A stretch of DNA of 64,000 nucleotides from Macrostomum lignano. Its lineage: Eukaryota. Both the position numbers and the translations under genes were made by a program. Below are positions 32,876 through 63,701 of the stretch, piece by piece (positions within the stretch are counted from its first letter, which is position 1; every line of letters starts with the position of its first letter). The notes beneath the pieces are model-generated. The model saw only the letters and a list, made by a program, of their open reading frames with translations, made no database searches and was not told the DNA's origin. The stretch spans positions 210,175 through 274,174 of the forward strand of contig NIVC01002656.1 in assembly GCA_002269645.1 (NCBI GenBank). The letters are read 5' to 3'.

Positions 32876-33130
32876 TCTTTCAGTCCCTAAATCTGCCTCT
32901 TTGCCCCTCAATTATATCCAGTCTATTACGTAATCGGTAATATAGCTATTCTAAAAGCAGGCACATGAACCAGTGAAGCAGTCAGTTTCAACGTAAAATT
33001 GAAAAACAAAAGCCAACAATTTCAGCCGCTAATCGCCAAGACTCTGTCCACAGCCGGACCAGCTCTCTCACTATTAGCTACTATCAGTAGACATTCAAGC
33101 TCTAGCTTTAAAAACATCAAAACTATAAAA

Positions 33131-33757
33131 ATGATTGCCCCAGCAGCGGAGCGCAACAAGGAGCCAATCTTGGCCATCATGCGGCAGTACGTGCCCGCTG
33201 ATGGAGCCGCCTGCCGAATGCTGGAGATCGCGTCCGGCACCGGACAGCACTGTGCTCATCTGGCCGCCGGCCTGGCCGATCGCGGCCTTCAAATCCAGCC
33301 GTCCGAGATTGACAATCAAGACCAGAGCAGCAGCAGCAGCTTTGCCAGCATTGAGGCGCACTGCCGCAGCCTGTCTAATGTCTGCCTGCCGCCCATGCGG
33401 TTGGACATTTCTAAACGGCCGTGTCCGGAGCCGCCTTTCGGCCGGCCGGACATTATATTCTGCGCCAACATGATTCACATCAGCTCCACGGCCGCTGTTG
33501 AAGGCCTGTTCGCCAATGCTGGCAACCTGCTGCCTGCCGGTGGCCGCCTCATCACCTACGGACCCTACGCTATTGACGGCGCCATCTATCCGCAGAGTAA
33601 CGCCGATTTTAATCGGTCGCTTCGCGCCCGAAATCCCGACTGGGGCCTGCGGGACACGGCCTATCTGGCCGGCTTGGCCGAGGCCGCCGGGATGGCCCTG
33701 TCGGCCAGGCACGAGATGCCGGCCAATAACTGGATGCTGGTCTTTGATAAGAGCTAG
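33131..33757 (+). CDS. METTL26: Methyltransferase-like 26 (DUF938 family), 208 aa, intronless CDS
   Basis: MIAPAAERNKEPIL, LEIASGTGQH (SAM motif I), CANMIHIS, GRLITYGPY, SNADFNRSLRARNPDWGLRD, MPANN. Confidence 0.93.
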   Translation: MIAPAAERNKEPILAIMRQYVPADGAACRMLEIASGTGQHCAHLAAGLADRGLQIQPSEIDNQDQSSSSSFASIEAHCRSLSNVCLPPMRLDISKRPCPEPPFGRPDIIFCANMIHISSTAAVEGLFANAGNLLPAGGRLITYGPYAIDGAIYPQSNADFNRSLRARNPDWGLRDTAYLAGLAEAAGMALSARHEMPANNWMLVFDKS

Positions 33758-40500: not shown

Positions 40501-43500
40501 CGATTCTAATTGATAATCTCATGGAATCTCATCGATTCTAATGGATAAACTCGTGGAATCTCATCGATTCTAATGGATAATCTCGTGTTATCTCATCGAT
40601 TCTAATGAATAATCTCATGGAATCTCATCGATTCTAATAGATAATCTCATGGAATCTCATCGATTCTTATGGAATCTCATCGATTCTAATGGATAAACTC
40701 GTGGAATCTCAACGATTCTAATGGATAATCTCATGGAATCTCATCGATTCTAACTGATAATCTCATGGAATCTCATTGATTCTTATGGATAAACTCGTGG
40801 AATCTCAACGATTCTAATTGATAATCTCATGGAATCTCATCGATTCTAACTGATAATCTCATGGAATCTCATTGATTCTAATGGATAAACTCGTGGAATC
40901 TCAACGATTCTAATTGATAATCTCATGGAATCTCATTGATTCTTATGGAATCTCATCGATTCTAATGGATAATCTCATGGAATCTCATCGATTCTAATGG
41001 ATAATCTTATTGAATCTCATCGATTCTAATGGATAATCCCATGGAATCTCATTGATTCTTATGGATAAACTCGTGGAATCTCAACGATTCTAATTGATAA
41101 TCTCATGGAATCTCATTGATTCTTATGGATAATCTCATGGAATCTCATTGATTCTTATGGATAAACTCGTGGAATCTCATCGATTCTAATGGATAATCCC
41201 ATGGAATCTCATGAAGCGCCACATCAAGCAAGAAGCTCTCGCGCACTCACCCGCTCCGTCCTCGCGCTGCTGCTGCACCCGTAGCCGCCGCGCGCAAGCC
41301 ACGGCGAAGCCGGTCAGGGCGATCGCTGTGATCAGAACAACGCCGACACCGACGCACAGGGTTGCAACGGCGACGGCGAAGACCAGCTTGCGGCTGCCGC
41401 TTCGGCTGGCGGACGCCGCTCCCCACCCCGCTGGCTGCCGCCGGCGCTGTCGCAAGGTGGCCGTGACGAGCAGCCGGTAGGTCCGCCCCGCGGAATCCAC
41501 AGAAACCGCGCGATTCATCAGCCGCATCGGCAGCAGGAAAGTCTTGACCTCCAGTTCGCCCTGTGCAGCGGAGGAACTCTTTGGAGGAAGTCGCCGAAGA
41601 CAGATGCGTTGACTTCCTTTGTCTGGTGGCAGCTCGAAGTGAAGCTCGCCGTGAGAGCTGTCTGGCTGAAGCGGCTGTGGCTCACCGAATGTCGCCTCAA
41701 AGCTGCCGCCAGCCAGCGACGCGACTCCGTAGCTCAGCACTGCGCAGACCGACCGGCCATCCGCGTCGACCACCGCATCGTTGACGAGATCGACAGGCAG
41801 AGGGTCGGGCGGCTCCACGCATCCGCGCTCGGGGACAGCGTGCGGCAGCCGGCACAGTCGTGGAGGAAACTCCGTTACCGGCGGCGTTGAAAACATCGGA
41901 GGAGGAGACGATGACGGCCGACCGACATCGATGCAAATCTCGGCAACTGAAGCCGGTGAATATCCGGTGCCGTGCTCCAGCGGCAGCTCATTGTCGACAC
42001 GCACCCGGAAACGGAACTGGCGAGCCTCCGCAGATGGGGCGGCGTCTCTGAACGGCGCAGCCAGCCGGATCTCCCCGGTGCTCGGGTGAACCTCAAAATA
42101 GCGCCGCGCTATCATCGATGTCATCGTCGCGTCTCCGCTGCCCGTCTGTCGGACAATGCTGAAGCGCAGGCGCCGGTTCCGAGGATCGCCGTCTGCATCG
42201 GCGGCTTCGAGTTGGCCGACGAGGCTGCCAGCTGGCGCCGTCGGATCCAGACGGAATCGCCGCCTGCCCGGCAAAATGATCGGCGCGTTGTCGTTAGCAT
42301 CGACCACTTTAATGACTATGCTCGCTTCGGCGATGGCGGTCGCGTTGCTGGCTGGATCGACGGCCAGAGCGCGGAAGCTGAACGGCCTGCTGCGCTCCTC
42401 AAAGTCCAAGACTGAAGACACTCGCAGCTCTCCACTGCGCTCCTCGACGCTGAACGCCGAAGCGTCTTTACCGTCGAGTCGATAGGCGACACGGTTGTTG
42501 GGTGCGGCGTCTCTGTCCACGGCTGTCAGTCTGGGCAGTGGATGAAGCTCGACAGCGCGGCCCAGCGGCGAGTTCTCCGCCACGCGGCCGGTGTAGGCCG
42601 GCGCCGCGAACTCCGGCGCGCAGTCGTTCTCGTCGGTGACAGCCACGGTTAGCGTTGCTGTTGCTGTCAACTTCGTTGTCGTTGCGTCGCTGTCAGTCCA
42701 ACAGGCGACTCGCAGCAGGTGCTCGGCGATCAACTCCCTGTCGAGCGTCGCCGAGGTGATGAGAAGAAACTCCCTGGCGCCGCCGCTGCCGGGGCCGATG
42801 CCTGGTGCGTGGGTTGCAGCTGCTGGCTGGAGTCTGCGCGATGAAGGTGTTTTCGGACATTCGTGAAATCACGACTTGAAGAAACTGATGTTCGAAGAAA
42901 TAGTGGTACTATTCGGGGTAATGCCCTCCAGAGCGACGCTATGCACGAGCAGAGTGCATACGAGAACAAGGACCACTAGAAGTTGCGTTTGTATCAAGAC
43001 GCAACAGTCACGTTCTATGGACAATCTTCATACGCCGCCAACTTTACCCCACCCAGTCGAGGGTGGCAATAAAACTGATCCACTCTCTCCTTTCAGCAAC
43101 AAAGCCGCCGCCGCCGCCAGCTCCCAGACAGCGGGAGAGAGGCTTGGCTACCACTATTTTTGTTTACAGAAGTTTGTTATTGCCTATAAAATTATATAAT
43201 AAAGTATTAGTATAATACTGAATACAATAAAATATCGCTGATATTTGCCAATCGCTCAACACAATTTCTAGAGATTCCCCTAGCTCGGCTTTGTGCATAC
43301 TTGCGGATTCCTCCATGAGGCGCCTATGTACTCTCATTAGGAGTCTACGGAATTCCCATGGCTTTGCCTGCGGCAGAGTTGAGCTATGCAAACACATAGG
43401 CGCCCTTCTGATCCGGGCCCACGGAATTTCCGTGGCTTTCCCTGCGGCAGAGTTGTGTTATCCTCTACTACTCGTGTTCAACCAAGATAGAAATTATCCA

Positions 43501-45727: not shown

Positions 45728-48700
45728 TGCTGTCCTCTGATTTTCCAGTAGCAGCTATTTATATTATAGTATCGCAACTTGTACGAAGCAGGCTTATTGA
45801 AGCTTTGTGCACTTGATGCATAATTAGTGGCGGCTTATTGCATATGGCACATCTAGAGTTTGACGCCTAAAGTAGAAAGACGAATGTGAAATCCGTCCTC
45901 CAAATGCTATTTGCTGAGGCCAATACGAGATTGCAATTGGAGAGTTGAAAAGAATGCCATTGGATGGCTTGATGATTGGTCAGTGTACCGCTGTTGATAG
46001 TCTGCCTTGGGCCACTTTACATCCTGTTTGAGCGTGTGCACATGCATGAGTGCGTGCCTGTGTACAGTATTGGCGTTTGCTTAGGAGTCAGCGAAATGTC
46101 CAGAATTGCCTCGGTGCTGGCTGTGGGATTGATTTCGCCGTGAAGGCGTTGCGTCAGGGTTTCTAAAACGTTTTCAAATTGCAGTGAACTGGATTAAGTT
46201 CTCAGTGACTAAATGAGCTTACGAGCTCGTAATTATGAGTATGTTATTCAACAGATTATTTTTATATCAAACCGATAAAGGCTTAGAAAATGTTTCAAGC
46301 AACCAGCTTTCACTTTGAAACTTGACCTACCGCGTATCTGGTAAGACAAGGTGCGACGTGAGGTGTTGAGTTTGCGGAACAACTGGCCTTATCTCATCAG
46401 CTGTGCATCGCTGTGCCTGATTCGGCTTTGAACAAGAAACAGGGTGTGAAGTCTCGGCGCGAGAGACAATTTTAACACGCGCCTTTCCCAGCACTTAAGC
46501 CAGTCAGTTGCAATTCGACTGTCAAAGCTTCTTAAGTCCGGACTGACTACATACAAGGCATACATGCTTTCAGCCGTTGGGAACTTCATCCGTCGAAACC
46601 TTTTACCGTTTGGTGAAGAAAAGTGTCCGAGAAAACGACGCGCTGAAACCTGTCATGTCGGGATTCCAGTCCTTTATACCGATGCGAAGTATTTTCCGGA
46701 ATGGGAGGAAACGGAGGAAGGCCTGCATGGCAGCGGGGACTTCCGATAAAGAGATTTAGATGCCTGAATCTGCGCTCCTCGAATCTCAGCTTTACGACGC
46801 ATCGCCATGTTCGATGATCGAATTGCACTCAACTCGCTTGCAATTCGCTATCTGATGCCACAGTGTGCACTGTAAGAAAAATGCAAAATCCTCTGGCTAT
46901 ACATCTGTTGGAACTGCACTTTTGTCAGTCTCCGATAGGGCTCGGTCGGCCAGGAAAAGTTGGGACAGTCGGGAATTCAATTCAAGAACCAGGAGAAGCT
47001 GCATGAAATTAGTGATGTTATATGACCTCCTTTGTTTATTTTTAATAGAGTATAGTGAGGCAGAAATATTATAAGCCTGTTAGGCCTTTGCATAGGACTT
47101 CTCTAGACATGGCTGCTCAGTCAGGAGCCACTAGCTAAGCTGCTAGGTGATATCGAGCGCCTGTCATTCTTAGCATCGCAGCTATGGCTCGAGAGAAAGC
47201 GGTGGTGACGTGTCGATCAACAGCTGCCCGATTAAGAAGTACAGTTTAAGAGTTTCTTCCCGACTGCGACAGGTTTGGGAAGTTCCAGTTGTAATCCGAT
47301 AATTAAAACATTACACTGTAATAGAGAGCCTTTGCGACAGAGCAGCTCAGCGGTAACGCGTTCGACTCTCCAGGCCGGGTTTGTTTCCGCGTGTGGCCGC
47401 AACAAATTGCCTCAAATGGCCTCAAATTAGCACAGAGTGTGCACTCCTGACGATCGGAAAGCCAGGACCGCTGCACACCCTGTGCGAGTCTGTGCCTGCG
47501 GAATCAACAAGACCATTTGTCTCCTAGCTGGTGACAGGGTCAGTGTCCTAAAGACTCGTTTACAGTGCCATAAAATGAGCCGTTGGATCACACGAGTTAT
47601 GGTCAAAGTGACGACAAACTATGTATACAAGCCGTGTGACCGACTTGATTTGATGGCAATGTAAACGAGCCTTAAGCCAGCTTCAACAAATTAATCGTAG
47701 TTAAAGCATAGTCCAAAGTCTGAACCCCGAAATTGCACGAAATCCCATATGAAGCGAAAAGTCACGAAAACAAGTCGTCCAACAGTCGTTGTGTTAGCGC
47801 TTAACTTTCTACTAACTCAAGTAGACTAAACAGAGTTGTTAGAAATGCGAGATGCGATTCAAATTCATAAATTGATGCAGATGCGCTTTAGACGCAACTC
47901 AGTTATTCTAAAGCGACTCCAGCACGCCTCAGAAACGACTCTATGGCCCCAGAGACATTATAGAAGCGCCCCAAAGTCTCTTGCGTCGTCCCATGCAGTG
48001 TCGTTTGAGAGTCGCAACTCTTTGACGACTTTTGGGCGACTTTCACTGTTACATATATCGTTGTCTTAAAGTCATTTAGAGTCACTTCTTTCCTATTTTA
48101 CCTGCGTTACCTACAAAGACTCTGAAAAGACTCTGGGGGCGACGCAAGTGACTCTGGGACGCTGGGTTTATATAAGCTTTGCGTCCAGATGCAATTAAAG
48201 GTGCTTTCAGAACAAAACTTTATGCTGCAGTGAAGTGTCGAGCCTTTTTCCACTCATTTTTTCTATAAAAAAACCGCACGAGGAAGACGCCATCCCCACT
48301 CTTGACAAATTTTTCGATGCCTAATTCTTCGAAACACTTGAAGCTTGGGTGCACACAATTTAACAAAATGCAATAAGAATCCAGTTGACAACGGTCATGA
48401 CTATAAAAATATTCAAAGATGTATAGGATGTTTCAATCAAAACTAGGGGTTTTTACATTTCCAGCATCAGCCAACCAGGACTTTAACGAAGCACAAATAA
48501 AATAAGTATAACTTCCCACATGATCCAAAATGCACTCAATTTTCACTGCGGCTCAGTAGCACTCTGAGTCCCGCCCATCGGAAGACTATTTTTACCATGA
48601 AATTGTGAGTGACACGGCGATTTTGACCACTTTGATCAATATTTCAATCAAAGGAAGACAAGAATATGAAGTGTGATAAATGAATAATGTTTTTCCGTTG

Positions 48701-48855
48701 TATACTTTTTTAATTAAAAAATAATTAGAAATATAATTTAAGAAGTACTCTGAGCGTGGAAATACGATACATCAACATCAGCAAATCAAGACGGCAGTGG
48801 TGGGCAGAGTCCGGTCCGTGTCCGAGGTCAGTCGGTGCAGCGGAGCACCTGCGGC

Positions 48856-49131
48856 CTACTTGCCTGGGAACGGCAAGTGGCGGTAGATCCTGTAGGCAGT
48901 GCGAACCACGCGGTACACCCGCCTCCACCTGATGCGGATGCGACGGAATCTGATGCGCCACTTCTTCTGCAGCTCAGCAGCCTTCTCGTCCGTCATCTCC
49001 GGCTCGTCCATGTCAGCCAGAGCCTCCAGAGCCGCCATCGACTCCGCGTCCTCCTCCGACATCTCCTGGCTGGGTCTGGCGACGGCCAGAGCTGCGCACA
49101 GCAGGAGTCCGAGAACGAACTGCCACCTCAT
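48856..49131 (-). CDS. Secreted cationic peptide precursor, copy A1 (91 aa), putative antimicrobial peptide
   Basis: Signal peptide aa 1-18, acidic propiece aa 19-57, KK, then WRIRFRRIRIRWRRVYRVVRTAYRIYRHLPFP-GK*; intronless; paralog at 58219. Confidence 0.85.
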   Translation of the reverse strand: MRWQFVLGLLLCAALAVARPSQEMSEEDAESMAALEALADMDEPEMTDEKAAELQKKWRIRFRRIRIRWRRVYRVVRTAYRIYRHLPFPGK

Positions 49132-49408
49132 GCTTGCTTGGTTGAGTTGTGTAGCCTGATGAAGCTGAGAAGCTGAGAGATATCTCGTTTGCTGTTGGTT
49201 TATTTTTGCTCTCTCAGGCGTCTCGTATTTATGCAGAGAAACTCGGCACGTTTTTCCGCAAGTTGTTCTTTTTCTGTTTTCGCAATGGCCTTCACGAGCG
49301 GCTGCTTTCTTTTAGACTCAGGTCAGGAACAATAAAATTGCTTTCATATCTTTGAACGCTGTTGCTATTATCATAATTGGGCACTTCTCAAGAATAGAGT
49401 GGCATTGA
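49132..49408 (-). promoter_or_regulatory. Conserved upstream region of the peptide genes
   Basis: About 90% identical by eye to 57948-58218 (inverted) and alignable to 51055-51330; contains TATA-like GCATAAATA and TTGCG(G)AA motifs. Confidence 0.6.
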
Positions 49409-49980
49409 CCGCAGCTACTGTCACCCATTTTGGTATTGTATTTTTCTGCAAAGCTTCGCGGAATGCAAGCCGTGTTTACATAGCCAGAAATCTTGCCATG
49501 CCACATCAGATAGCAATTTGCTCTTATTGTGGCCCTGAGTTCGTCGGCACTGCAAGTTCAGATGAAATTGCACTGCATTATTGATGCTTACTGAGAAGAA
49601 CTGCATGGAACTGCAATCTGATTCGATTCAATCTGCTTCGACTGGTTCTGCTCGGAAATTTCCTATCGAATTGAATTCCTTTATGATTTGCTTATAGCTT
49701 TTGCAGTTCAGTTTCCAGTCTGAATTACGAACGGATCTCATAATCGTATTAACCTTGGTACGATATAATGCTCCTATTTTATTGAGTTTTTTACCTGTAC
49801 GAATGCAAGAGCTGAGGGCACCCTGCCTCAATGCATTGTGGGAGACCACGGTCATCAGTTCCATGGAGCTGTCACACGATAAATACAAAGCCAAAGCATT
49901 GGCTTTCCAGCCTCAACAGGGTGATATGGTACATTGTCACTTCTGCAGCAGCTACCTAAGGGCAGCTAGGAAAGCAGCAG
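49409..49980. repeat. Segmental block B, copy 1
   Basis: Near-identical direct copy at 61528-62100; inverted partial copy at 59811-60216; diverged partial copy at ~51325-51520. Confidence 0.9.
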
Positions 49981-51028
49981 TCTGTGCCTGTCTGTGCCTG
50001 TCTGTGCCAGTCTGTGACAGTCTGTGCCAATCTGTGCCTGCCTGTGCCTGTCTGTGCCTGTCTGTGCCAGTTTGTGCCAGTCTGTGCCAGTGTGTGCCTG
50101 TCTGTGCCTGTCTGTGCTAGTCTGTGCCAGTCTGTGCCAGTGTGTGCCTGTCTGTGCCTGTCTGTGCCTGTCTGTGCCAGTCTCTGCCAGTCTGTGCCAA
50201 TATGTGCCTGTATGTGCCTGTCTGTGCCTGTCTGTGCCAGTGTGTGCCAGTCTGTGCCTGTCTGTGCCTGTCTGTGCCTGTCTGTGCCTGTCTGTGCTTG
50301 TCTGTGCTTGTCTGTGCCAGTCTGTGCCAGTCTGTGCCAGTGTGTGCCTGTCTGTGCCTGTCTGTGCCTGTCTGTGCCTGTCTGTGCCAGTTTGTGCCAG
50401 TCTGTGCCAGTCTGTGCCAGTCTGTGCCAGTGTGTGCCTGTCTGTGCCTGTCTGTGCTAGTCTGTGCCTGTCTGTGCCAGTGTGTGCCTGTCTGTGCCTG
50501 TCTGTGCCTGTCTGTGCCTGTCTGTGCCTGTCTGTGCTTGTCTGTGCTTGTCTGTGCCAGTCTGTGCCAGTCTGTGCCAGTGTGTGCCTGTCTGTGCCTG
50601 TCTGCGCCAGTGTGTGCCTGTCTGTGCCAGTGTGTGCCTGTCTGTGCCTGTCTGTGCCTGTCTGTGCCTGTCTGTGCCAGTGTGTGCCTGTCTGTGCCTG
50701 TCTGTGCTAGTCTGTGCCAGTCTGTGCCAGTGTGTGCCTGTCTGTGCCAGTCTGTGCCTGTCTGTGCCTGTCTGTGCCTGTCTGTGCCTGTCTGTGCCAG
50801 TCTGTGCCAGTCTGTGCTAGTGTGTGCCTGTCTGTGCCTGTCTGTGCCTGTCTGTGCCAGTCTGTGCCAGTGTGCGCCTGTCTGTGCCTGTCTGTGCTAG
50901 TCTGTGCCAGTCTGTGCCAGTGTGTGCCTGTCTGTGCCTGTCTGTGCTAGTCTGTGCTAGTCTGTGCCAGTCTGTGCCAGTGTGTGCCAGTATGTGCCTG
51001 TCTGTGCCGGTCTGTGCCAGTCTGTTCC
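49981..51028. repeat. 10-bp satellite (TCTGTGCC[T/A]G)n
   Basis: About 105 units; shorter copies at 59410-59810 (inverted) and 62100-62375. Confidence 0.97.
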
Positions 51029-51054
51029 AGTCCGAGAACGAACTGCCATCTCAT
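51029..51054 (-). pseudogene. 5' stub of a third peptide gene copy (A3): MRWQFVLGL fused to the 10-bp satellite
   Basis: ATG AGA TGG CAG TTC GTT CTC GGA CT is identical to copy A2; the upstream region is retained to ~51330. Confidence 0.85.
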
Positions 51055-51791
51055 GCTTGCTTGGTTGAGTTGTGTAGCCTGATGAAGCTGAGAAGCTGAG
51101 AGATATCTCGTTTGCTGTTGGTTGAGTTCTGCTCTCTTAGGCGTCTCGCATTTATGCAGATAAACTCAGCACGTTTTTCCGCAAGTTGTTTTTTTCTGTT
51201 TTCTCAATGGCCTTCACGAGCGGCTGCTTTCTTTTGAGTCTTTAGGCCAAGTGCAATAAAAAATTTTTACCGCTTTTTCAATTGTCACCGCTGGGCGCTT
51301 CTCAAGCATAGGGAGGGGGGCATTGACTACAGCTGCTGTTAGCCATCTTTCTTTGCATTGTCTTTCTCTGCACAGCCCTTCGCCCTGCCAAGGCCGCTTC
51401 GTGGAATGCAAGCCGTGTTTACGTAGCCAGAAAACCTGCCACATAAGATAGCAATGTGCTCCTTTTATGGCCCGAGTTCGTTGGCACAGCAAGTTCAGAT
51501 GAAATTGCATTGCAATTATACTTATACCCAGACGCAATAGCAAAATATTTTGGCCATGATTCCACACTTTTCAGGTTCTAGGCCATAGACAAAAGGATTT
51601 GACAGTAGAGGCTTCCTTGAAATAATATATATATTAATTGATATTGAACAAATGCAGTGTTGAAAACGCCAAATTACATGAAAAAATGATAATTATCTTA
51701 AGCAAAACTTTTGCAACACACTTCATCAGTTTGTATAGTCAACATTTTACAGCGAGTGTTTACTTATCGCCCCGAAATAAAGCTGCAGTTC

Positions 51792-52100
51792 TCAAAGCGG
51801 CAGTTCCATCTGCTCATTGAAGCCACTCACTTCCGGCAGGTCCGGCAGTTCTTCAGTTCCATGGTCGTTCTCAATCCAATCAATGAAATCCCGCAAGGCC
51901 TGGTCATCGTGGTGGTCCGTTGAACTGAGCTCAGACAGCAGTTGCAACTCGTCCATCTTGACTCCGTTTAGCGAGTCCGCGGGAAGATGTTTCCAGTAAT
52001 AAGCGCAGCCATAGTTGCCTTGTAGAGAGAGAGCTTGAATTTTTGAGAACCGCATAACATAATCAAAGACTTTGAGGAAACTGTTTTGTCTATGGCCCAT
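51792..52100 (-). mobile_element. Crypton-like 5' remnant (acidic N-terminal segment only)
   Basis: WKHLPADSLNG..DELQLLSELS..DDQALRDFIDWIE..LPDLP aligns with the N-termini at 52500 and 60561. Confidence 0.5.
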
Positions 52101-52221
52101 CTAATTATATGGTAGACCTCGTATAGCTCTCGTGTGTTTCGTCTATGGTAAACTAAATCGCAAAACAGCCAATAGCACCAGGGCCAAGAAGTGTTGAATA
52201 ATGGCAGCGACAAGTGTTAAA

Positions 52222-55200
52222 TAATGGTAGGTTAATATGAAGCACAAATTCACGTTAATGGCCAAGGGTACGCGCACGAGTGGCAATTTGGCCATTAACT
52301 TGAATTTGTGCTTCGTATTAGCTGCATTGATTGAATTGTCTATGGGTGAAAAGGCAGGAAAGAAAATATCGATGCGTACACTTCATGTCAATGGCCAGTA
52401 CCGCAGATAACATTGGTGAAGCAGTTGTCTATGGCCGAAATTGGAGGCAGAAATAATAATAACGCAGAAAGAATACAGACTTTGGACAGAATTTTCCCCA
52501 GTTGCTCTACTGTAGCTATGTCCGTTATCAACTTAATCAATTGGGGCAATTTGCCCTGCGACGAACTTGGCAACATAACGAGTTCGGAGTTGGACTTCGT
52601 TGCTGCTGCTTCTGCGAGCGAACGCCATGACGAAGAGTTCGCAGCTTTTTTGCAATTCATTCAAGAGCCACCTTCGGATACCAGCAGTTTGCCGTTGCTT
52701 GAAGAAGACACGGTTGATATATCGGAGATGGACAGAGTTGAAATCGACAGTTTGCCACAAGACACAAGGAAACAAATGTACCAGTTTGGACAACGCTTCC
52801 AGGAGTTCATAAAGTCCGAGAAACTAAAAGATATTGAATTCACTACAAACGAAGCACTGAATCAGTATCTACGTTATTTTTCTATTTCAAGCTAAAAAAG
52901 CAGGAAGGATCAGTCTACTCTCCAGCAACGCTTATATGCATTCGGGCCGGCATTCAACGTTTTCTGCGGATGGTTTTGAAACGATCGGTTGACATCATCA
53001 ATGGTGAGGAATTCCGATCGAGCAACGAAATGCTGCGCGTAAAGGTGCGCGAATTCCATCGAGCTGGACTGACCACTAAACAGTACAAACCAATCGAGAC
53101 TGGTGATATGCAAAAGCTTGCATGCTACTTTGAGGGAGGTACGGCAGTGGCAGAGCAGGACAAATTTCTGTTTTGTCCTTTATTGCTTGAGCGAAAGAGG
53201 CCAAGAGCACCTGCAGCATCTGACACGACGAGATGCATTAGAGCTGCACACCGACTCTGATGGTAAGGAGTTCTACTGTCTCCCGCCCCTTCCGTCTAAG
53301 AATAAGTCCGCGGATCCAGTGAGAAGTAAAGCAAAACCCGACAACAAGCAGGCAAGGATTTACGATACTGAAAAGGTACGACGGTATCTAGACCTTCTAC
53401 CAGTTGAAACCAAGGATGAAACCAAGTGAGGAGGGCAAGGTGGAGACCAAGAAAGACGGGAAGCGCGCCGCTCCCGGAGCTGGGGCTCAGGCTCCGCCGG
53501 CCAAGCGGCAGCAGCAACCCGATTCCGAGCCTAAGAAGGCTATTCGCGCTGCTGAGTCCGCCTCGCGCGGACGTAGACCCGCCCGCAGTAACCGGCGGTC
53601 CGGTCTAATCCAGCGCGCACTTGACGAAGCTCAGTCTCTGAGACTTCACCTCGAGCAGACTCGTGCCGCTCGCAAAAGCACTGAAAGCCAGCCGAGGGAA
53701 CTGAACGACGGCATGGCTCAGCCTTCCAACTGGTGGGATTACCACCAGCAGGACGCTGCCGGCCGAGCTCAGACTCCCGACGGCGGGGCGCAAGGCGAAG
53801 GCAGCAGCCGTACCCCAGTCGCTGGGGAGGAGGGCGGTGTGGCGCGGCTAGGTGACTCACCTGCCGTGGGCGCCGTGTCCGTCTCCGCGGCGGCTGGGGA
53901 GGCGGCTGAGCCTGAGCCAATGGAAATTGGCGACTCAACTCTCACCGATGAGGCTGAGAATGAGTTGCTTTTCTCCTCCCCTGGACAGTAGACATGACTG
54001 TCTCCCAGGGCATCCACTGCTTGCAGGTCAACCTGCAGCACAGCATTGCTGCTTCAGTCAACCTCTTGAAGCACACTGACCAATACGCGCCAGGGATTAT
54101 CCTTATCCAGGAACCTTGGACGCTAAGGGGCAGTCCCCAACATGTCCCCACCGGCTACCAGTGTTTAACCGCTGGCACCCCGGGAGGGAAACCTGGCACC
54201 AAGATCCTGCATCATGGTGTCCAATTCTATTAACGCATGGCTCAGATCGGACCTGTCCACCAGGGACATCTGCGTCATCCAATCTGAAGACATACTCCCT
54301 GGGAGGACTACCCTCATCGCCTCGGTTTACCTACCGGGCGACGGCGAGATGATCCCAGTAGAGCTTGTCACACTGGTCGAGCTCTGCTCCACCAGAAATT
54401 ATGAGCTGCTTGTGGCAGGCGATATCAATGCCCACCACACCCACTGGGGCAGTTCTGATATAAACCAGAGAGGTGAAGACTTCCTGGCTTATATTGCTAC
54501 TACAACCCTTGAGTTCTGTAACTCGGGTAGTACCTCTACCTTCAATAACGGACGCCGATCGGAGGTGCTGGATGCCACCCTCGCCACGCCCAGGCTCTTC
54601 CAGAGCACTAGGGAGTGGCGAGTGCTTTCTGAGACGTCCCTCTCCGATCACAAGTTCATCTCTTTCACGCTGACCAGCGCCCGAAACGCAGGCCAGCTTT
54701 ACTGGAAACGGAATGCTAGGAATACCGACTGGACCGCCTTCAGGCTTGCCCTGGAGGAGACCTATCGTTGCACTAGCACTCCAGTCTCCATCAACACCTG
54801 CGAGGAAGCAGATGAATTTGCGGCCGCACTTACGGACTCGCTCACTGAGAACCCAGGAGAAACACTGGAAGCGATGCTAACAGCGTTTTTTCCGAACGAG
54901 CCAGCCAGGCCCGACCCCCCTGATCACTCAGTGGGCGGACACGTACTGGCCGACTCAATCATCACGGAGGACCGCGTTACTAAAGCAGTCTCCTCCTTCA
55001 AACCCTTCAAATCCCCAGGACCGGACGGCGTTGTGCCAGCCTTCCTACGGGAGGCGGTGAAATGCACACTGGTTTTCTGCGGAACCTTTGCCGGCTTCTG
55101 AAAGCCTGCATTGTTCTCGGCTTTGTTCCGAAACCCTGGACCGAGGCCAAGGTGGTCTTTATCCCCAAGCCCGGCCGACCGGACTACCGGTCCATTAAAT

Positions 55201-57947
55201 CCTTCAGACCAATTAGCCTCACCTCCTCATTGGTGAAGCTGTTGGAGAGACTGGTGCTTTGGCGCCTCCTCTCTGTGGAACTAAAGAACAAGCCGCTCAG
55301 TGAGAACCAGCACGCCTTTCGGGTAGGCAGGTCCACGGAGAGCGCGCTTCACGTTTTGGTTGACATGCTGGAGAAAGCCGTTCTTGGTAATGGCTACGCT
55401 CTCGCTGTCTTCCTCGACATTGTTGGAGCCTTCGATAATGTCCTCTTTGAGGCTTTTGACAGAGCTCTACGTGCTAGAGGAACCCACTCGCACCTCACCC
55501 GGTGGATCATGTATATGATCAGCCACCGTACTGCCACCGCACACCTGTTGGGCCACCAACGGACGGTTACCGTCTGCAAAGGCAGCCCCCAGGGCGGTGT
55601 CCTCTCTCCAGTTCTCTGGAACATGGTCATCGATGAGCTCCTCCAGGACAGCCATCTTGACCCCATCCTTAAGGTCGGTTACGCCGATGATGTCACAGCC
55701 GTGGCATCCGGACCGTCACCTGAAACCCTTAGGGATCTTCTGCAAAACTTTATTTACTCTGCTGAACGATGGGCGGACAGGTGCGGCCTCAGGCTCTCTG
55801 AGACCAAAACTGTCGCGATCATGTTCACCAGCAGGGTAAACTGGCGTATTCGCCCACTAAAGCTTTACGGGGTGGAAATTCCATCCTGCAAGCAAACCAA
55901 GTGTCTCGGCGTGACGCTGGACCATCGGCTGAGCTGGTCCACCCACGTCCAGGCCAAAACCAAAAAAGCCCTCGCGATTCTTGCGCAGCTGCGCAGAGCC
56001 GTCGGCACCACCTGGGGCCTCACCCCGAAACGGCTCTGGTGGATCTATACCGCAATGGTCCGACCGGCCGTTACTTACGCCCGCCTGGTCTGGACCAGCG
56101 CCTTGCAGATTAAAACCTGCCACGAAGCCCTCAAAAAGGTGCAGGGACGTGCATGCCGCATGATCCTGAATGCCCCGCTCTCTGCTCCCTTTGACGGCCT
56201 CAACGCCTTTCTTTGCCTTCCGCCTCTGGACATCTTTGTCCGTCGCGAGGCTGCTAAAACGACCCGCCGGCTCATCGAGGCTGGCGTTAGCTTCAAGCCA
56301 CAAAGAGCGATGGCGAAGCGCAAGCTCCTGCCGCACTCTGACCTGTGCATTAAAGTTCTGGAGGAGAGTGGGAGTGCGGCTGTCCTGTCGGACGCTGAGC
56401 CGCGCTCCCTCAATCTCTACCAACGCTTCAAGGTCACTATCCCCTCCAGGGAGAACGCCAACGACAGCTGGGCCCCTCAGGAGGTTCACTGCTTTACTGA
56501 CGGATCCTCCAAAGACGGTTTATCCGGCTTTGGAGTCTGCATCCTTATCAACGGCCGCGTGATTGCTACTCACGCCCAACACACTGGCAGACTCTCCAGC
56601 GTCTTCCAGAGTGAAGTCCTTGCTATCAGCTCCTGTGCAGCTGAACTCCACTGCAAGGACTTCAAGGACAGAAGAATCTTCTTCCACTCTGACAGCCAGG
56701 CCGCTTTACAGGCCCTGTGTCACACCACTACGAACTCCCGAACAGTCCGCGACTGTATCGGGCAGCTCAACAAGCTGGCTCGGAGGAACACCGTCCGGCT
56801 TACGTGGATCCCAGGACACGCCGGCTTTAAAGGTGAAGACGCCAAGCACTTCGTCTGCTACTGCCCGGCCTTCAACCGAGACCGGCTCAACCACCTCGGG
56901 CCCAACCCGTCCCTGGACGACGTTTGCCGGCCCGAGAACATCCCACGGCTCATCCGGTTCCTCCGGGCCACCAAGCGAGCCTCCGTCTTCCTCACCGAAG
57001 ACAACGCTGCAGACAGGACCGGCAGACCTCCCTGACCGGCCCCGCGCCCTAGCCTATGCGGGTCTTTCAGGGATTAGCGGAATGGGCGACGCTCGCCTCC
57101 CCGCTGCGTCTTCGGACCGCCCTGCAGCTAAGTCAAAGTAAGTCAAGGATAACCATCTATTTCCACAAACTCTGCGAACGGAAGTCCTACGTATTCAACG
57201 AAGCAGAATCGCGGTGTCAACTATCTTGTTCGATTCATGCATAACTTGAGCGAGAAGGCTGGGCTATCAAAGATGTATTCCAACCATTGCACCAGGTAGT
57301 ACGACTAATTTTTTTGATCTCGAAAATAACAGATTTTAGATCTTTAATTTATGAGAGAAACATTGTAAACTACATGCATTAGTAATTTAACATCATTAAT
57401 CATATTTTCTTAGGGTCACCAGGATTACGGATCTAGAGGCCGCGGGACATAGCATGGCCGACATTATGTCCATCACCGGCCAGACATCTGAACGAACGGC
57501 ACGCAGGTACCTTACAAAACGTCGGGACCGATCTCTGCAAGCGAGCAGCTCTGCTGTGACATTGGCATTGGCACTGCAAACTAAAGAAGAAGAAGTTAAA
57601 GTTGACCAGGCCGGACACGTAGGACCAAGCAATTCTGGGGCCAGTGAGCTTGATGTCAATGTGGTGTCAAACATGCAAATCACCGGCGTTAATCAGGAAA
57701 ATCTGGCGACGGCGAAGTTTAGCTTTAACAACTGCACCTTCTCCGAATGCAAAATCGTTTGATAAATAAGACAGCTAATGATATGAAGCTTAATACGACT
57801 TGATAGGAATTTACCATAAATAATTTAAAATAAATTGTTGCTTCGTTTGTCTGGTTTGCCCTTTACATTAAAATAGCTGTTTGTCTTACAGTTAATGATC
57901 GGTCATTAATCAGAGGACATTAACGTGAAGTGACATTTCGATCAATG
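52222..57947 (+). mobile_element. Crypton-type DNA transposon (tyrosine recombinase, DUF3504/KCTD1-like), degenerate, interrupted by a LINE
   Basis: Coding 52413-53417 plus 57151-57762, with at least 3 frameshifts: YFYFKLKKQEGSVYSPATLICIRAGIQRFL, RGQEHLQHL, NHCTR (HxxR), TGQ, RRY; GT-AG intron 57296-57413; short AATG-core terminal direct repeats and a palindromic left end. Confidence 0.8.
53418..57143 (+). mobile_element. Non-LTR retrotransposon, R1 group/LOA-like (APE-RT-RNase H), 5'-truncated and degenerate
   Basis: ORF1 tail to 53991; ORF2 from 53994: QVNLQH/IQEPW/GDINAHH/SDH (APE), FRPISLTS, FLDIVGAFDNV, GSPQGGVLSP, GYADD (RT), FTDGS/SEVLAI/SDSQAA/WIPGH (RNase H); two frameshifts; AAGT(C) tail; TSD CAAGGAT at 53411-53417 and 57144-57150. 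Confidence 0.92.
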
Positions 57948-58218
57948 CCACTCTATGCTTGAGAAGTGCCCAATTATAATAATTGCAACAGCGTTCAACA
58001 ATATGAAAGCAATTTCATTGTTCCTGACCTGAGTCCAAAAGAGAGCAGCCGCTCGTGAAGGCCATTGCGAAAAAAGAAAAATAACAACTTGCGGAAAAAC
58101 GTGCCGAGTTTATCTGCATAAATACGAGACGCCTGATAGAGCAGAACTCAACCAACAGCAAACGAGATATCTCTCAGCTTCTCAGCTTCATCAGGCTACA
58201 CAACTCAACAAAGCAAGC

Positions 58219-58491
58219 ATGAGATGGCAGTTCGTTCTCGGACTCCTGCTGTGCGCGGCTCTGGCCGCCGCCAGACCCAGCCAGGAGATGTCGGAGGAGG
58301 ACGCGGAGTCGATGGCGGCTCTGGAGGATCTGGCGGGCTTGGACAAGCCGGAAATGACCGAGGAGAAGGCCGCTGAGCTGGAGAAGAAGTGGCGCATGCG
58401 TCACCGCATCCACTTCAGGTGGAGGCGGGTGTACGGCGTGGTCCACAGGGTCTACAGGGGGTACCGGCGCATCATCTGCGGAAAGCGCTGA
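58219..58491 (+). CDS. Secreted cationic peptide precursor, copy A2 (90 aa), putative antimicrobial peptide
   Basis: Same signal and propiece as A1, KK, then WRMRHRIHFRWRRVYGVVHRVYRGYRRIIC-GKR*; AATAAA at 58662. Confidence 0.85.
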   Translation: MRWQFVLGLLLCAALAAARPSQEMSEEDAESMAALEDLAGLDKPEMTEEKAAELEKKWRMRHRIHFRWRRVYGVVHRVYRGYRRIICGKR

Positions 58492-59045
58492 AACTCAAGC
58501 AGACTCTCTGCAAAACAAGCTGAGCCGGACCTGTCTAAACTCGAGTAGTGACTCGAACCACGAAAAACAGCACAAATTTGTTACCCTTCAATATGTAATT
58601 TCAATATTCTAAATGTATATTAAGCTGCATTAAATACAACGGTCCACAATTATCGATCATCAATAAAAATTATGATCATCTCTTTTTATCGGTCAATCGG
58701 CCGCGAACTTTATTGATCAAAATTTTTCAAGGATGGAAGTCTTATATTTGTTCCTATGACGGTATTGAATTAACTTAGCGAGCATTTTTGCTGCATTTTT
58801 GATATTTGTTGGCCGCTGAAATTTCATAAACAGATTGCCGGCCAATGTAGAGCTGGGCTCAGTGCCAACTGGGAACAGAGGTAACTATAGATTTGGCCTG
58901 GCTGCGAAGTTTGACAACCTTGAAGAATGCCAGGTAAGCAAGCAAACTTTAACTCACATCATAAGATTCATCACTCCACTGCCACGGTCGCCGACCAACC
59001 AAATAGTGGGCGCTTCCTGCCAGGGGACGAGACTGAGCTACCATT

Positions 59046-59405
59046 CAGGTTGCTCGGCTGAGGAGTGGCCACTCAAAGCTCTCCACACAGCACAACTCAA
59101 CTGCTCAACTGCCCGGCCAACAACTCCGACCTGGAGGTCATCGACCTCTGGCAGCGGCCAGTGAAGGCCGCCGGTTTCCTCTGCCTTCTTGATCAATCTA
59201 CTGAGCAATGGTCAAACAGACACACATACACACACTCACTCACTCACCCACCCACTCACACACTCACTCACTCACCCACCCACTCATTCACTCACTCACT
59301 CACTCACTCACTCACTCACTCACTCACTCACTCACTCACTCACTCACTCACTCACTCACTCACTCACTCACTCACTCACTCACTCACTCACTCACTCACT
59401 CACTC
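59046..59405 (+). mobile_element. 3' fragment of an I-group-like LINE followed by a (CA)/(ACTC)n tail; inverted copy at 62376-62750
   Basis: SPHSTTQLLNCPANNSDLEVIDLWQRPVKAAGFL resembles the PH.T.HL..CP....L...DLW..P..AA.FL ORF2 C-terminus; followed directly by a microsatellite. Confidence 0.55.
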
Positions 59406-60216
59406 TGCCAGGCACAGACAGGAAAAACAGGCACAGACAGGCACAGACTGGCATGTGGACTGGAACAGACTAGCACACACTGGCAGAGACTGGCACAGAC
59501 AGGCACAGACTGGCAGAGACTGGCACAGACTGGCACAGATTGGCACAGACTGGCAGAGACTGGCACAGACTGGCACAGATTGGCACAGACTGGCACAGAC
59601 TGGCACAGATTGGCACAGACTGGCACAGACTGGCACACACTGGCACACACTGACACAGATTGGCACAGACTGGCACACACTGGCAGAGACTGGCACAGAC
59701 TGGCACAGACTGGCACAAACTGGCACAGACTGGCACAGACAGGCACAGACAGGCACAGACTGGCACAGACTGGCACAGACTGGCACAGACAGGCACAGAC
59801 AGGCACAGACTGCTGCTTTGCTAGCTCCTCTTAGGTAGCTGCTGCAGAAGTGACAATGTACCATATCACCCTGTTGAGGCTGGAAAGCCAATGCTTTGGC
59901 TTTGTATTTATCGTGTGACAGCTCCAGAGAACTGATGACCGTGGTCTCCCACAATGCATTGAGTCAGGGTGCCCTCAGCTCTTGCATTCGTACAGGTAAA
60001 AAACTCAATAAAATAGGAGCATTATATCGTACCAAGGTTAATACGATTATGAGATCCGTTCGTAATTCAGACTGGAAACTGAACTGCAAAAGCTATAAGC
60101 AAATCATAAAGGAATTCAATTCGATAGGAAATTTCCGAGCAGAACCAGTCGAAGCAGATTGAATCGAATCAGATTGCAGTTCCATGCAGTTCTTCTCAGT
60201 AAGCATCAATAATGCA

Positions 60217-61356: not shown

Positions 61357-61527
61357 CCATTGATCGAAATGTCACTTCACGTTAATGTCCTCTGATTAAT
61401 GACGGTCATTAACTGTAAGACAAGCAGCAATTTTAATGTAAAGGGCAAACCAGACAAACGCTACGCGCACTCGTACCCTTGGCCATTAGCTAACTTGAAT
61501 TTGTCCTTCATATTAACCTACCATTTA
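61357..61527 (-). mobile_element. 171-bp mini-Crypton (both ends of the 52222-57947 element joined)
   Basis: 61357-61462 is the reverse complement of 57843-57947; 61467-61527 is the reverse complement of the left end 52222-52285. Confidence 0.8.
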
Positions 61528-63701
61528 CCGCAGCTACTGTCACCCATTTTGGCATTGTATTTCCCTGCAAAGCTTCGCGGAATGCAAGCCGTGTTTACAT
61601 AGCCAGAAATCTTGCCATGCCACATCAGATAGCAATTTGCTCTTATTGTGGCCCTGAGTTCGTCGGCACTGCAAGTTCAGATGAAATTGCACTGCATTAT
61701 TGATGCTTACTGAGAAGAACTGCATGGAACTGCAATCTGATTCGATTCAATCTGCTTCGACTGGTTCTGCTCGGAAATTTCCTATCGAATTGAATTCCTT
61801 TATGATTTGCTTATAGCTTTTGCAGTTCAGTTTCCAGTCTGAATTACGAACGGATCTCATAATCGTATTAACCTTGGTACGATATAATGCTCCTATTTTA
61901 TTGAGTTTTTTACCTGTACGAATGCAAGAGCTGAGGGCACCCTGACTCAATGCATTGTGGGAGACCACGGTCATCAGTTCCATGGAGCTGTCACACGATA
62001 AATACAAAGCCAAAGCATTGGCTTTCCAGCCTCAACAGGGTGATATGGTACATTGTCACTTCTGCAGCAGCTACCTAAGGGCAGCTAGGAAAGCAGCAGT
62101 CTGTGCCTGTCTGTGCCTGTCTGTGCCAGTCTGTGACAGTCTGTGCCAATCTGTGCCTGCCTGTGCCTGCCTGTGCCTGTCTGTGCCTGTCTGTGCCAGT
62201 TTGTGCCAGTCTGTGCCAGTGTGTGCCTGTCTGTGCCTGTCTGTGCTAGTCTGTGCCAGTCTGTGCCAGTGTGTGCCTGTCTGTGCCTGTCTGTGCCTGT
62301 CTGTGCCAGTCTCTGCCAGTCTGTGCCAATATGTGCCTGTATGTGCCTGTCTGTGCCTGTCTGTGCCAATCTGTTCCAGAGTGAGTGAGAGTGAGTGAGT
62401 GAGTGAGTGAGTGAGTGAGTGAGTGAGTGAGTGAGTGGGTCGGTGAGTGAGTGAGTGAGTGAGTGAGTGAGTGAGTGAGTGAGTGAGTGAGTGAGTGAGT
62501 GAGTGAGTGAATGAGTGGGTGGGTGAGTGAGTGAGTGTGTGAGTGGGTGGGTGAGTGAGTGAGTGTGTGTATGTGTGTCTGTTTGACCATTGCTCAGTAG
62601 ATTGATCAAGAAGGCAGAGGAAACCGGCGGCCTTCACTGGCCGCTGCCAGAGGTCGATGACCTCCAGGTCGGAGTTGTTGGCGGCAGTTGAGCAGTTGAG
62701 TTGTGCTGTGTGGAGAGCTTTGAGTGGCCACTCCTCAGCCGAGCAACCTGCAAGGACTACTTAACAACTCAGGACGCTACACTCGCGAATGGTAGAAATT
62801 CTAGAAAAGGCCGCTTGCTTTAGCTGTGTCTATGGCAATGAAGCCTTTTCACTAACATTCTTTCATATTCTCAATGCTGGTTCAGACCAGCACTGCTGGT
62901 TTGTAGCAATAATTTGTTTTCGTCTAAAATCTTGATAAATAGCAACACTCTTTTTCATCAAAATGCCAATGAAGTGCTGCATCCCTGGATGCAGAAGCAA
63001 TTATAAGAGCGGTGAAAAATGCACTGTTTTTGGCTTTCCAAAGGAATAAGCTGAAGCTGAGGCATGGCTCCATGCGTTGCCTGTGCAAATTAAGGTAATT
63101 TATGTAGCCTTTTGAACCTAATTTTCGTTTTTACTATAAAGATACTTATATTAACTGAATTGTGATGATCATTCCATTCTATCTGTAGAAGGCTAGCATC
63201 TACATGGGAGTCTGCAAAAATCACTGGCCTGAAAATGCACCAATGAGACGAATTAACCGCCATACACGCCCATCGACCCACCCTCAATCTTTAAAGATTT
63301 TTCATTGACTTCCCTGCGTCAGACTGTCTCAAGTAAGTATGAATGGTTGTGTACTTAGTTTACTTACTAAGTTGTATCAGCCTGTTTCAAAATTTTAGGA
63401 CGCTCTAGAGATGCTGGTCGGCGAGCGTGCTGTTAGTCGACAGAGCTAGGGCCCCTGATGAATTGACTGCCTTCAATTCTGTCGACAGAATTGTCTCGTG
63501 GGCACTATTCATTACGTCAGCTTTGAGCCTGGATTTTGTTACCTCGGAGGCTGGATTGTTCAATGTCAGGATTTGCGAGTCGATTTTTGCTCATTCATGA
63601 GCGCACTGTTGAGTCTTCCGTTCGAGTTAAGAGCGACTTCACAGTCTTGGCGTATCGGCGCGATGTGCTTGTAAAAAATTTCTGACATATTAGGTTTTCA
63701 G

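Follow-up and report, generated by a model that had tools for sequence, protein, structure and literature searches.

Among the described systems closest to the genes reported here, cathelicidins join one conserved pro-region to peptides of quite different kinds: helical, Pro/Arg-rich (PR-39, Bac5/7), Trp-rich and amidated (indolicidin), or disulfide-bonded. Frog preprodermaseptins are encoded by multiple skin-gland genes that contain an intron and a KR processing site and specify mostly Lys-rich helices; in these amphibian precursors a highly conserved signal peptide and acidic propiece with a dibasic end reportedly (Vanhoye et al. 2003, Eur J Biochem) precede a hypervariable cationic peptide, often amidated via Gly-Lys/Arg. 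Antimicrobial peptide (AMP) families of Hydra show a bipartite charge distribution, tandem clusters of paralogs and restriction to a genus, and one of them, periculin, is expressed in the female germline. Here we describe two genes, A1 and A2, in a 64,000-nucleotide (nt) stretch of the genome of the flatworm Macrostomum lignano (‘the window’; contig NIVC01002656.1 of assembly GCA_002269645.1, positions 210,175 to 274,174), which encode precursors of Arg-rich peptides with predicted C-terminal amides and belong to a superfamily that, judged by sequence comparison, is so far seen in Macrostomum only and is previously undescribed.

The open reading frame (ORF) of A1 occupies 48856..49131 on the minus strand and encodes 91 amino acids (aa), and that of A2 occupies 58219..58491 on the plus strand and encodes 90 aa; the two are 78% identical and lie head-to-head, with ~9 kb between them, in a cluster whose paralogs are arranged both in tandem and inverted. 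These positions and lengths agree exactly with the original prediction, made from the DNA letters of the window, and translating the sub-parts reproduced its division of each precursor into an 18-aa signal peptide, a 39-aa propiece (with the claimed acidic content in A1), a KK site, a mature region of the claimed length and Arg and His content, and a GK or GKR end. Signal peptides and their cleavage sites were judged from sequence and the −3/−1 rule. The parts of A1 and then of A2 are:

49227..49258, minus strand: A1 core promoter module, CGGAAAAACGTGCC-N11-CATAAAT, with the TATA box 102 nt 5′ of the ATG
49132..49202, minus strand: A1 5′ untranslated region (UTR), its predicted start ~31 nt past the TATA box, holding CAGCTTCTCAGCTTCATCAGGCTACA
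49078..49131, minus strand: A1 signal peptide MRWQFVLGLLLCAALAVA, 18 aa, predicted cleavage after A-V-A
48961..49077, minus strand: A1 acidic propiece RPSQ...ELQKK, 39 aa, 13 Asp/Glu, net charge −11 before the KK
48865..48960, minus strand: A1 predicted mature peptide WRIRFRRIRIRWRRVYRVVRTAYRIYRHLPFP, 32 aa, 12 Arg, charge +12
48856..48864, minus strand: A1 Gly-Lys-stop, predicted amidation and carboxypeptidase signal
48709..48714, minus strand: A1 poly(A) signal ATTAAA, 141 nt past the stop codon
58092..58123, plus strand: A2 core promoter module, CGGAAAAACGTGCC-N11-CATAAAT
58219..58272, plus strand: A2 signal peptide MRWQFVLGLLLCAALAAA, ending AAA
58273..58389, plus strand: A2 acidic propiece ...ELEKK, 39 aa
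58390..58479, plus strand: A2 predicted mature peptide WRMRHRIHFRWRRVYGVVHRVYRGYRRIIC, 30 aa, 10 Arg, 3 His, charge +10, one C-terminal Cys
58480..58491, plus strand: A2 Gly-Lys-Arg-stop
58629..58634 and 58662..58667, plus strand: A2 poly(A) signals ATTAAA and AATAAA, respectively

Moment calculations bore out the proposal that Arg and hydrophobic residues alternate in the N-terminal half of each mature region and that the C-terminal half has helical amphipathic spacing: strand-type moments of N-terminal windows reach 1.52 in A2 and 1.17 in A1, and helix-type moments of C-terminal windows lie at 0.9–1.04. The helix moment is 0.51 for A1 (shuffle P 0.05) and 0.62 for the paralog A4 (shuffle P 0.01). 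AlphaFold2, run on the A1 precursor with a 14-sequence family alignment, placed helices at residues 3–18, 27–41 and 48–85, with a mean predicted local distance difference test score (pLDDT) of 71; mature A1 was modelled as a single helix, residues 48–85 (block pLDDT 79–87), a hint that the mature peptide may be helical.

A1 and A2 are very probably genuine secretory prepropeptide genes. That they are not chance ORFs follows from the in-frame indels of six intact paralogs (A1 to A6), from the pattern of selection, from the promoter and poly(A) signals, and from the existence of gene models derived from RNA-seq. In a DNA alignment of the six paralogs, conservation begins ~130 nt upstream of the ATG with CGGAAAAACGTGC[CT]GA...[CT]ATAAAT (the TATA box standing 101–107 nt before the ATG), runs through a 5′ UTR segment, where CAGCTTCTCAGCTTCATCAGGCTACA is invariant in all six, and through the signal and propiece codons, and fades in the mature-peptide region, where every indel keeps the frame. 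By the Nei-Gojobori method, pooled over all pairs of the six, the ratio of nonsynonymous to synonymous differences per site (pN/pS) is 0.16 in the signal peptide (pS 0.095), 0.35 in the propiece (pS 0.247) and 0.71 in the mature peptide (pS 0.359), with several mature-region pairs at ~1. Purifying selection acts on signal peptide and propiece; the mature region evolves under almost no constraint or is diversifying.

At their 3′ ends the paralogs fall into two unrelated UTR types, A1/A3/A5/A6 versus A2/A4. A2 and A4 have a common C-terminal end (...YRRIIC-GKR) together with their own 3′ UTR type (58455–58700 in the window, versus 48700–48890 for A1), a pattern that suggests exchange of a 3′ module between paralogs; the single C-terminal Cys of these two peptides could give rise to disulfide-linked dimers. 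All six paralogs have a poly(A) signal, 359 nt past the stop codon in A6 and 127–206 nt past it in the other five, which predicts mRNAs of ~690 nt for A6 and ~500–560 nt for the others; the ~509 nt predicted for A1 may be set beside the 501-nt transcript of A3.

The promoter module occurs twice in the window, at A1 and A2 only, where none would be expected by chance. It was found five times in locus L004 of the same assembly and four times in locus L006 (NIVC01000181.1), always beside a family gene. Its form across the superfamily is CGGAAA[AC]A[CT]GTG[CG]C with a TATA box 12–14 nt further on, seen near family genes only, and the genes for short peptides carry it as CCGGAAACACGTGCC-N12-14-GCATAAAT. 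Such a common module implies that the family is co-regulated. The module joins an ETS-like GGAA core and an ACGTG/CACGTG E-box-like core.

GenBank models of M. lignano, derived from RNA-seq and transcript assemblies, cover both genes. A1 is annotated only inside a chimeric model, Mlig001477g4 (P0001, 139 aa; L004:5001-32330), which begins at the ATG of A3 and splices across 27 kb into the 5′ UTR of A1, so that A1 and A3 have no correct separate annotation. A2 is annotated only as a frameshifted ‘partial’ model, Mlig001660g1 (P0004), because one G is missing from its signal-peptide codons in L004 (21290–21354) that is intact in the window (58219–58272); this single-nucleotide difference either stems from an error in the assembly or distinguishes alleles or paralogs. 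The original prediction had staked itself on the existence of transcripts, and transcripts exist, both behind these models and as the 501-nt RNA of A3. An exact-sequence look-up of A1 and A2 in a contig index returned no entry.

A profile hidden Markov model (HMM) scanned against 1.84 billion representative proteins, together with a profile word search of 5.8 billion, recovered ~30 gene models, all of them ‘hypothetical proteins’ of M. lignano except for one 929-bp Sequence Read Archive contig (Logan SRR31628392 contig 42504). The member on this contig is divergent: its peptide is a Pro/Arg repeat, its promoter has the module described above, and the M. lignano proteins at NCBI do not include it. 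Leaving out chimeric and partial models, we count at least 27 distinct precursors, which have in common a signal peptide of the form M[KR]WQ[LFI][AV]LGLLLC.., an acidic propiece of 33–38 residues with a net charge of −4 to −16, and a hypervariable cationic tail, joined to the propiece through KK or KKK (EK or LK in three subfamilies). Propiece charge runs opposite to peptide charge (Spearman rho −0.84, without phylogenetic correction). Although the peptides are hypervariable, 22 of the 27 precursors end in G, GK or GKR, which greatly strengthens the earlier proposal of amidation, the amide itself being a prediction.

Two things had gone unseen in the original prediction: the family is far larger, and most of its members encode very short peptides, 6–10 residues long and perfectly alternating. 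Examples are FVRVRVRL-G, FVRVRARIRL-G, IFRVRVRI-G, WLRVRARVRI-G, IFRVHVRF-G, FIHIHF-G and GFHVHFH-G; strand-type moments are 1.1–1.45 for the short members that contain Arg and ~0.6 for the His-only types (FIHIHF, GFHVHFH). His-alternating hexa- and heptapeptide amides recall designed metal-binding, sheet-forming peptides. Four short-peptide genes lie within 10 kb at locus L006 (at 1175 on the minus strand, 2898, 6732 and 10047) and encode FVRVHVRF-G, FIHIHF-G (twice) and WLRVRARVRI-G. Other members depart from this type: P0006 is a Pro/Arg repeat (FLRVRLPRVRMPRVRLPRVRLPRLRVRFRWSKK), P0008 a two-Cys peptide, P0030 a His/Arg/Tyr-rich 37-mer, and the A subfamily, to which the genes of the window belong, encodes peptides of 28–34 residues. 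A single prepro scaffold thus carries peptides resembling several AMP classes – helical amphipathic, alternating strand-type, Pro/Arg repeat, two-Cys and His-rich.

The original prediction had recognised no named family, and none was found in Pfam, PDB, the HMM scan of 1.84 billion proteins or full-text searches. None of the 24,736 Pfam families, those of cathelicidin and dermaseptin type among them, matched above its gathering threshold; a Latarcin match (PF10279) in one of 14 members tested was sub-threshold (E = 0.059), and all other matches, such as HCMV_UL124 and Lock_Gag1-like on the acidic propiece, lay below cut-offs and were set aside as chance. A phmmer search of PDB sequences with the mature peptide gave no match, and the HMM scan gave no homolog outside Macrostomum and no Hydra protein. 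Family gene IDs, transcript IDs and peptide strings are absent from the searchable full texts; the supplements of Wudarski 2017, Grudniewska 2016 and 2018 and two papers of 2023–24 held nothing on the family, and those of Brand 2020 held no family ID other than Mlig001477.g4.

In their design the genes nonetheless resemble several known systems. Like the preprodermaseptins, they form a multigene family with the selection pattern measured here, a conserved prepro part and a variable peptide; the flatworm genes differ in being intronless, in their KK site, in Arg-richness and in their many 6–10-residue products, and no sequence similarity was found. The variety of peptides on one prepro scaffold (A-type, P0006, P0008 and short members) is shared with the cathelicidins; there is, however, no cathelin domain here, the propiece being a 33–38-residue acidic stretch with two predicted helices in A1. 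In spider latarcin precursors, too, a signal peptide and acidic propiece accompany a linear cationic cytolytic peptide, amidated in some cases; processing motif and taxon differ. The combination of signal peptide, basic cleavage sites and C-terminal Gly recurs in flatworm neuropeptide precursors (NPF, FLP, npp), presumably served by the same enzymes; in these, however, the peptide is conserved and orthologs span flatworms, whereas in the genes described here it is the peptide that varies, and the searches found no ortholog outside Macrostomum.

The nearest likeness in the peptide itself is to the arminins of Hydra. Arminin 1a-C (KPWRFRRAIRRVRWRKVAPYIPFVVKTVGKK-NH2; PMC6217004) and the A peptides have a motif WRxR...RxRWR[RK]V in common, with 8 of 15 residues identical, and in both precursors a signal peptide and an anionic N-terminal stretch precede a strongly cationic Arg/Trp-rich C-terminal peptide (arminin being used in amidated form). 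Clustered paralogs and restriction to one genus complete what is an analogy of design rather than a sign of common descent, and we read the resemblance as convergence. Arminins are expressed in endodermal epithelium, in contrast to the gonad entry for the flatworm paralog A3 described below. In sum, the family is new but of a kind already well known, and hence not a categorical novelty.

Data on expression concern A3. An in situ hybridisation (ISH) probe for transcript RNA815_1838.3 (501 nt) is entered in Table S11 of Brand et al. 2020 (PMC7336406), with ‘gonads’ as the site, Ramm et al. 2019 as the source and Mlig001477.g4 as the gene to which the transcript maps; the entry gives neither epidermis nor gland. 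Both ISH primers match A3 exactly (L004:4977-5340) and span 364 bp of genome, the same length as the transcript predicts for the probe; over that span A3 is therefore intronless. The original prediction had spoken of two intronless paralogs: the lack of introns stands for A3 by this measure, but the number does not, for the window holds a truncated third copy and the superfamily is large. At 86% identity to A1 over the full probe, and 87% to A2 over 267 nt, the A3 probe probably reports the whole A subfamily. Read counts for RNA815_1838.3 in a positional RNA-seq data set (Arbore et al. 2015, PMC4490696) are 93 in head-only fragments (A), 94 in head plus testis (B), 49 in head plus testis plus ovary (C) and 176 in the whole worm (D), and the transcript was classed as without regional enrichment.

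Taken as a working unit, each gene would be a compact, intronless stretch of ~0.5 kb driven by the common promoter module. The signal peptide would direct the precursor into the endoplasmic reticulum, the anionic propiece would neutralise the cationic part, a prohormone-convertase-type protease would cut at KK, and at the C-terminal Gly (with Lys/Arg) carboxypeptidase trimming would be followed by amide formation through PHM/PAL; flatworms possess PC2 and PHM/PAL and make amidated peptides. The products, which are likely to be amidated cationic peptides, would be amphipathic and 28–34 residues long in the A subfamily and 6–10 residues long in most other cases. Their likeliest activity would be to bind and disrupt anionic membranes, as expected of the host-defence or antimicrobial type, and they may act in or around the gonads, protecting gametes and eggs. 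The features that define precursors of cationic AMPs as a functional class – secretory signal, processing site, cationic amphipathic product – are present, and on the strength of this design we hold a putative antimicrobial or host-defence main role to be an evenly balanced proposition. The earlier interpretation is in this sense partly supported, design and family novelty standing firm while the host-defence function is a conjecture on which the expression data are equivocal.

Several observations weigh against such a role. Convertases favour KR and RR over KK, the junction reads EK or LK in three subfamilies, and the terminal Gly is absent in five of the 27 members. Pooled pN/pS over the six paralogs does not exceed 1 in the mature region, so that positive selection is not demonstrated. 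Expression is low (49–176 reads per ~50 million), and the head-only level equals that of head plus testis while the ISH entry says ‘gonads’, so that the two data sets disagree on location. The literature searched contained no Macrostomum AMP paper and no infection data set. Homology to the arminins was considered and rejected: mature A1 against arminin 1a-C gave a BLASTP E of 50 and a Smith-Waterman shuffle z of 2.8–3.9 (about 3), in a pairwise test that used the C-terminal 31 aa of arminin only.

The same evidence bears on other readings. The A3 probe entry ‘gonads’, credited to a study of socially sensitive gene expression, and the breadth of a probe that is 86–87% identical to A1/A2 and so probably covers the whole subfamily, would fit reproduction-related secreted peptides (acting on gametes, the egg envelope or mate interaction) that evolve fast under sexual selection and for which antimicrobial activity is not the main role; reproduction-related genes of Macrostomum are known to evolve rapidly, and the family is taxon-restricted and expanded. 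The positional RNA-seq, however, shows reads in head-only fragments and no enrichment in the testis or ovary regions, and the design, a cationic and amphipathic amide with a propiece to neutralise it, is common to membrane-active peptides at large, while we know of no counterpart to it among flatworm sperm, egg or seminal proteins; we consider a mainly reproductive role rather unlikely. A further variant, which we regard as a long shot, ties the superfamily to the germline: ultra-short amides that form strands, of the types (hydrophobic-Arg)n and (hydrophobic-His)n, might together with longer helical derivatives self-assemble on membranes or on gamete and egg surfaces and serve egg or sperm protection or sexual conflict rather than classical epithelial immunity; if true, the strand-forming amides would be a natural counterpart of designed alternating sheet-forming peptides. 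A protamine-like sperm nuclear protein was ruled out by the hydrophobic signal peptide, the ~50% hydrophobic/aromatic content and the amidation signal.

The canonical precursor of a neuropeptide or peptide hormone, whose amidated products act on receptors, likewise combines a signal peptide with a dibasic site, a C-terminal Gly and one short amidated product (6–10 aa in most members here); flatworms have many amidated neuropeptides, and some neuron-derived peptides of Hydra are antimicrobial as well. Yet at least 27 hypervariable paralogs on a conserved prepro part are the reverse of the usual conserved peptide among variable spacers, the HMM scan found no orthologs outside Macrostomum, a charge of +10 to +16 with 35–45% Arg is unlike that of known neuropeptides, and the ISH entry for A3 is the gonads and not the nervous system, all of which makes signalling through receptors an improbable function. 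Marginally more improbable still are cytolytic or defensive gland secretions directed at food (diatoms) or predators, or self-assembling strand-type peptides that structure a secretion: the short members are perfectly alternating hydrophobic/cationic amides (FVRVRVRL-NH2, FIHIHF-NH2), such alternation favours sheet assembly, and one member has the sub-threshold Latarcin match (E = 0.059), but screens of this kind have ISH categories for pharyngeal glands, rhabdites and adhesive glands, and the entry for RNA815_1838.3 carries none of them. That the ORFs are non-functional passengers of a repeated or transposon-associated segment is scarcely credible: the genes do sit amid satellites, a retrotransposon and segmental duplications, and truncated and frameshifted copies exist, but the prepro part is under purifying selection, indels are in-frame only, promoter and poly(A) signals are conserved, transcripts exist and members lie at dispersed loci.

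We know of few or no validated gene-encoded antimicrobial peptides in free-living flatworms. With transgenesis, ISH and RNA interference established in Macrostomum lignano, the superfamily offers a tractable system for the evolution of hypervariable secreted peptides, and the ~130 bp of conserved upstream sequence lend themselves directly to use as a promoter in reporter lines. The very short Arg-rich amides are cheap to synthesise and are candidates for antimicrobial activity. Should the gonad expression be real, the peptides would be linked to gamete or egg protection in a hermaphrodite used for research on sexual selection. The size of the superfamily, its common promoter, the very short alternating amides and the possible association with the gonads together make an experimentally cheap lead in a model flatworm.

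Contig NIVC01001664.1 of the same assembly matches the window collinearly, with 97–99% identity. On that contig, past the right end of the window, follow intact A3 (88 aa), intact A4 (95 aa) and one pseudogene with a stop codon and a frameshift; two more intact A members, A5 (P0002) and A6 (P0003), lie on other contigs. Between A1 and A2 lie a truncated third copy, a 10-bp minisatellite, a non-LTR (long terminal repeat) retrotransposon and segmental duplications, of which the first three are:

51028..51182, minus strand: truncated third family copy; promoter, 5′ UTR and first nine codons (MRWQFVLGL, 51028–51054) intact, followed by satellite
49980..51025, no strand assigned: 10-bp minisatellite (GTCTGTGCCT)n, ~105 copies, standing in place of the body of the truncated copy
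54214..57035, plus strand: non-LTR retrotransposon, given as context only, with an endonuclease ORF (54214–55101) and a reverse transcriptase plus RNase H ORF (55062–57035)

Arrays related to the minisatellite recur at 59411–59812 and 62099–62367, and L004 holds two such truncated copies, at 28519 and 30162. With their pseudogenes and truncated copies, the clusters point to a birth-and-death mode of evolution.

The two ORFs of the retrotransposon are in different reading frames and overlap at 55062–55101; upstream of them, ORFs at 52413–52895 and 53404–53991 have no Pfam match and could be its ORF1. Neighbouring coding sequences in the window are a DUF938 (methyltransferase-like) ORF at 32999–33757 (plus strand) and a long exon with cadherin domains at 41186–42733 (minus strand). 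Microsatellites, (CACT)n and (GAGT)n, lie at 59229–59405 and 62379–62569, and a 0.6-kb segmental duplication, 99% identical between 49404–50001 and 61522–62119, flanks the satellite arrays.

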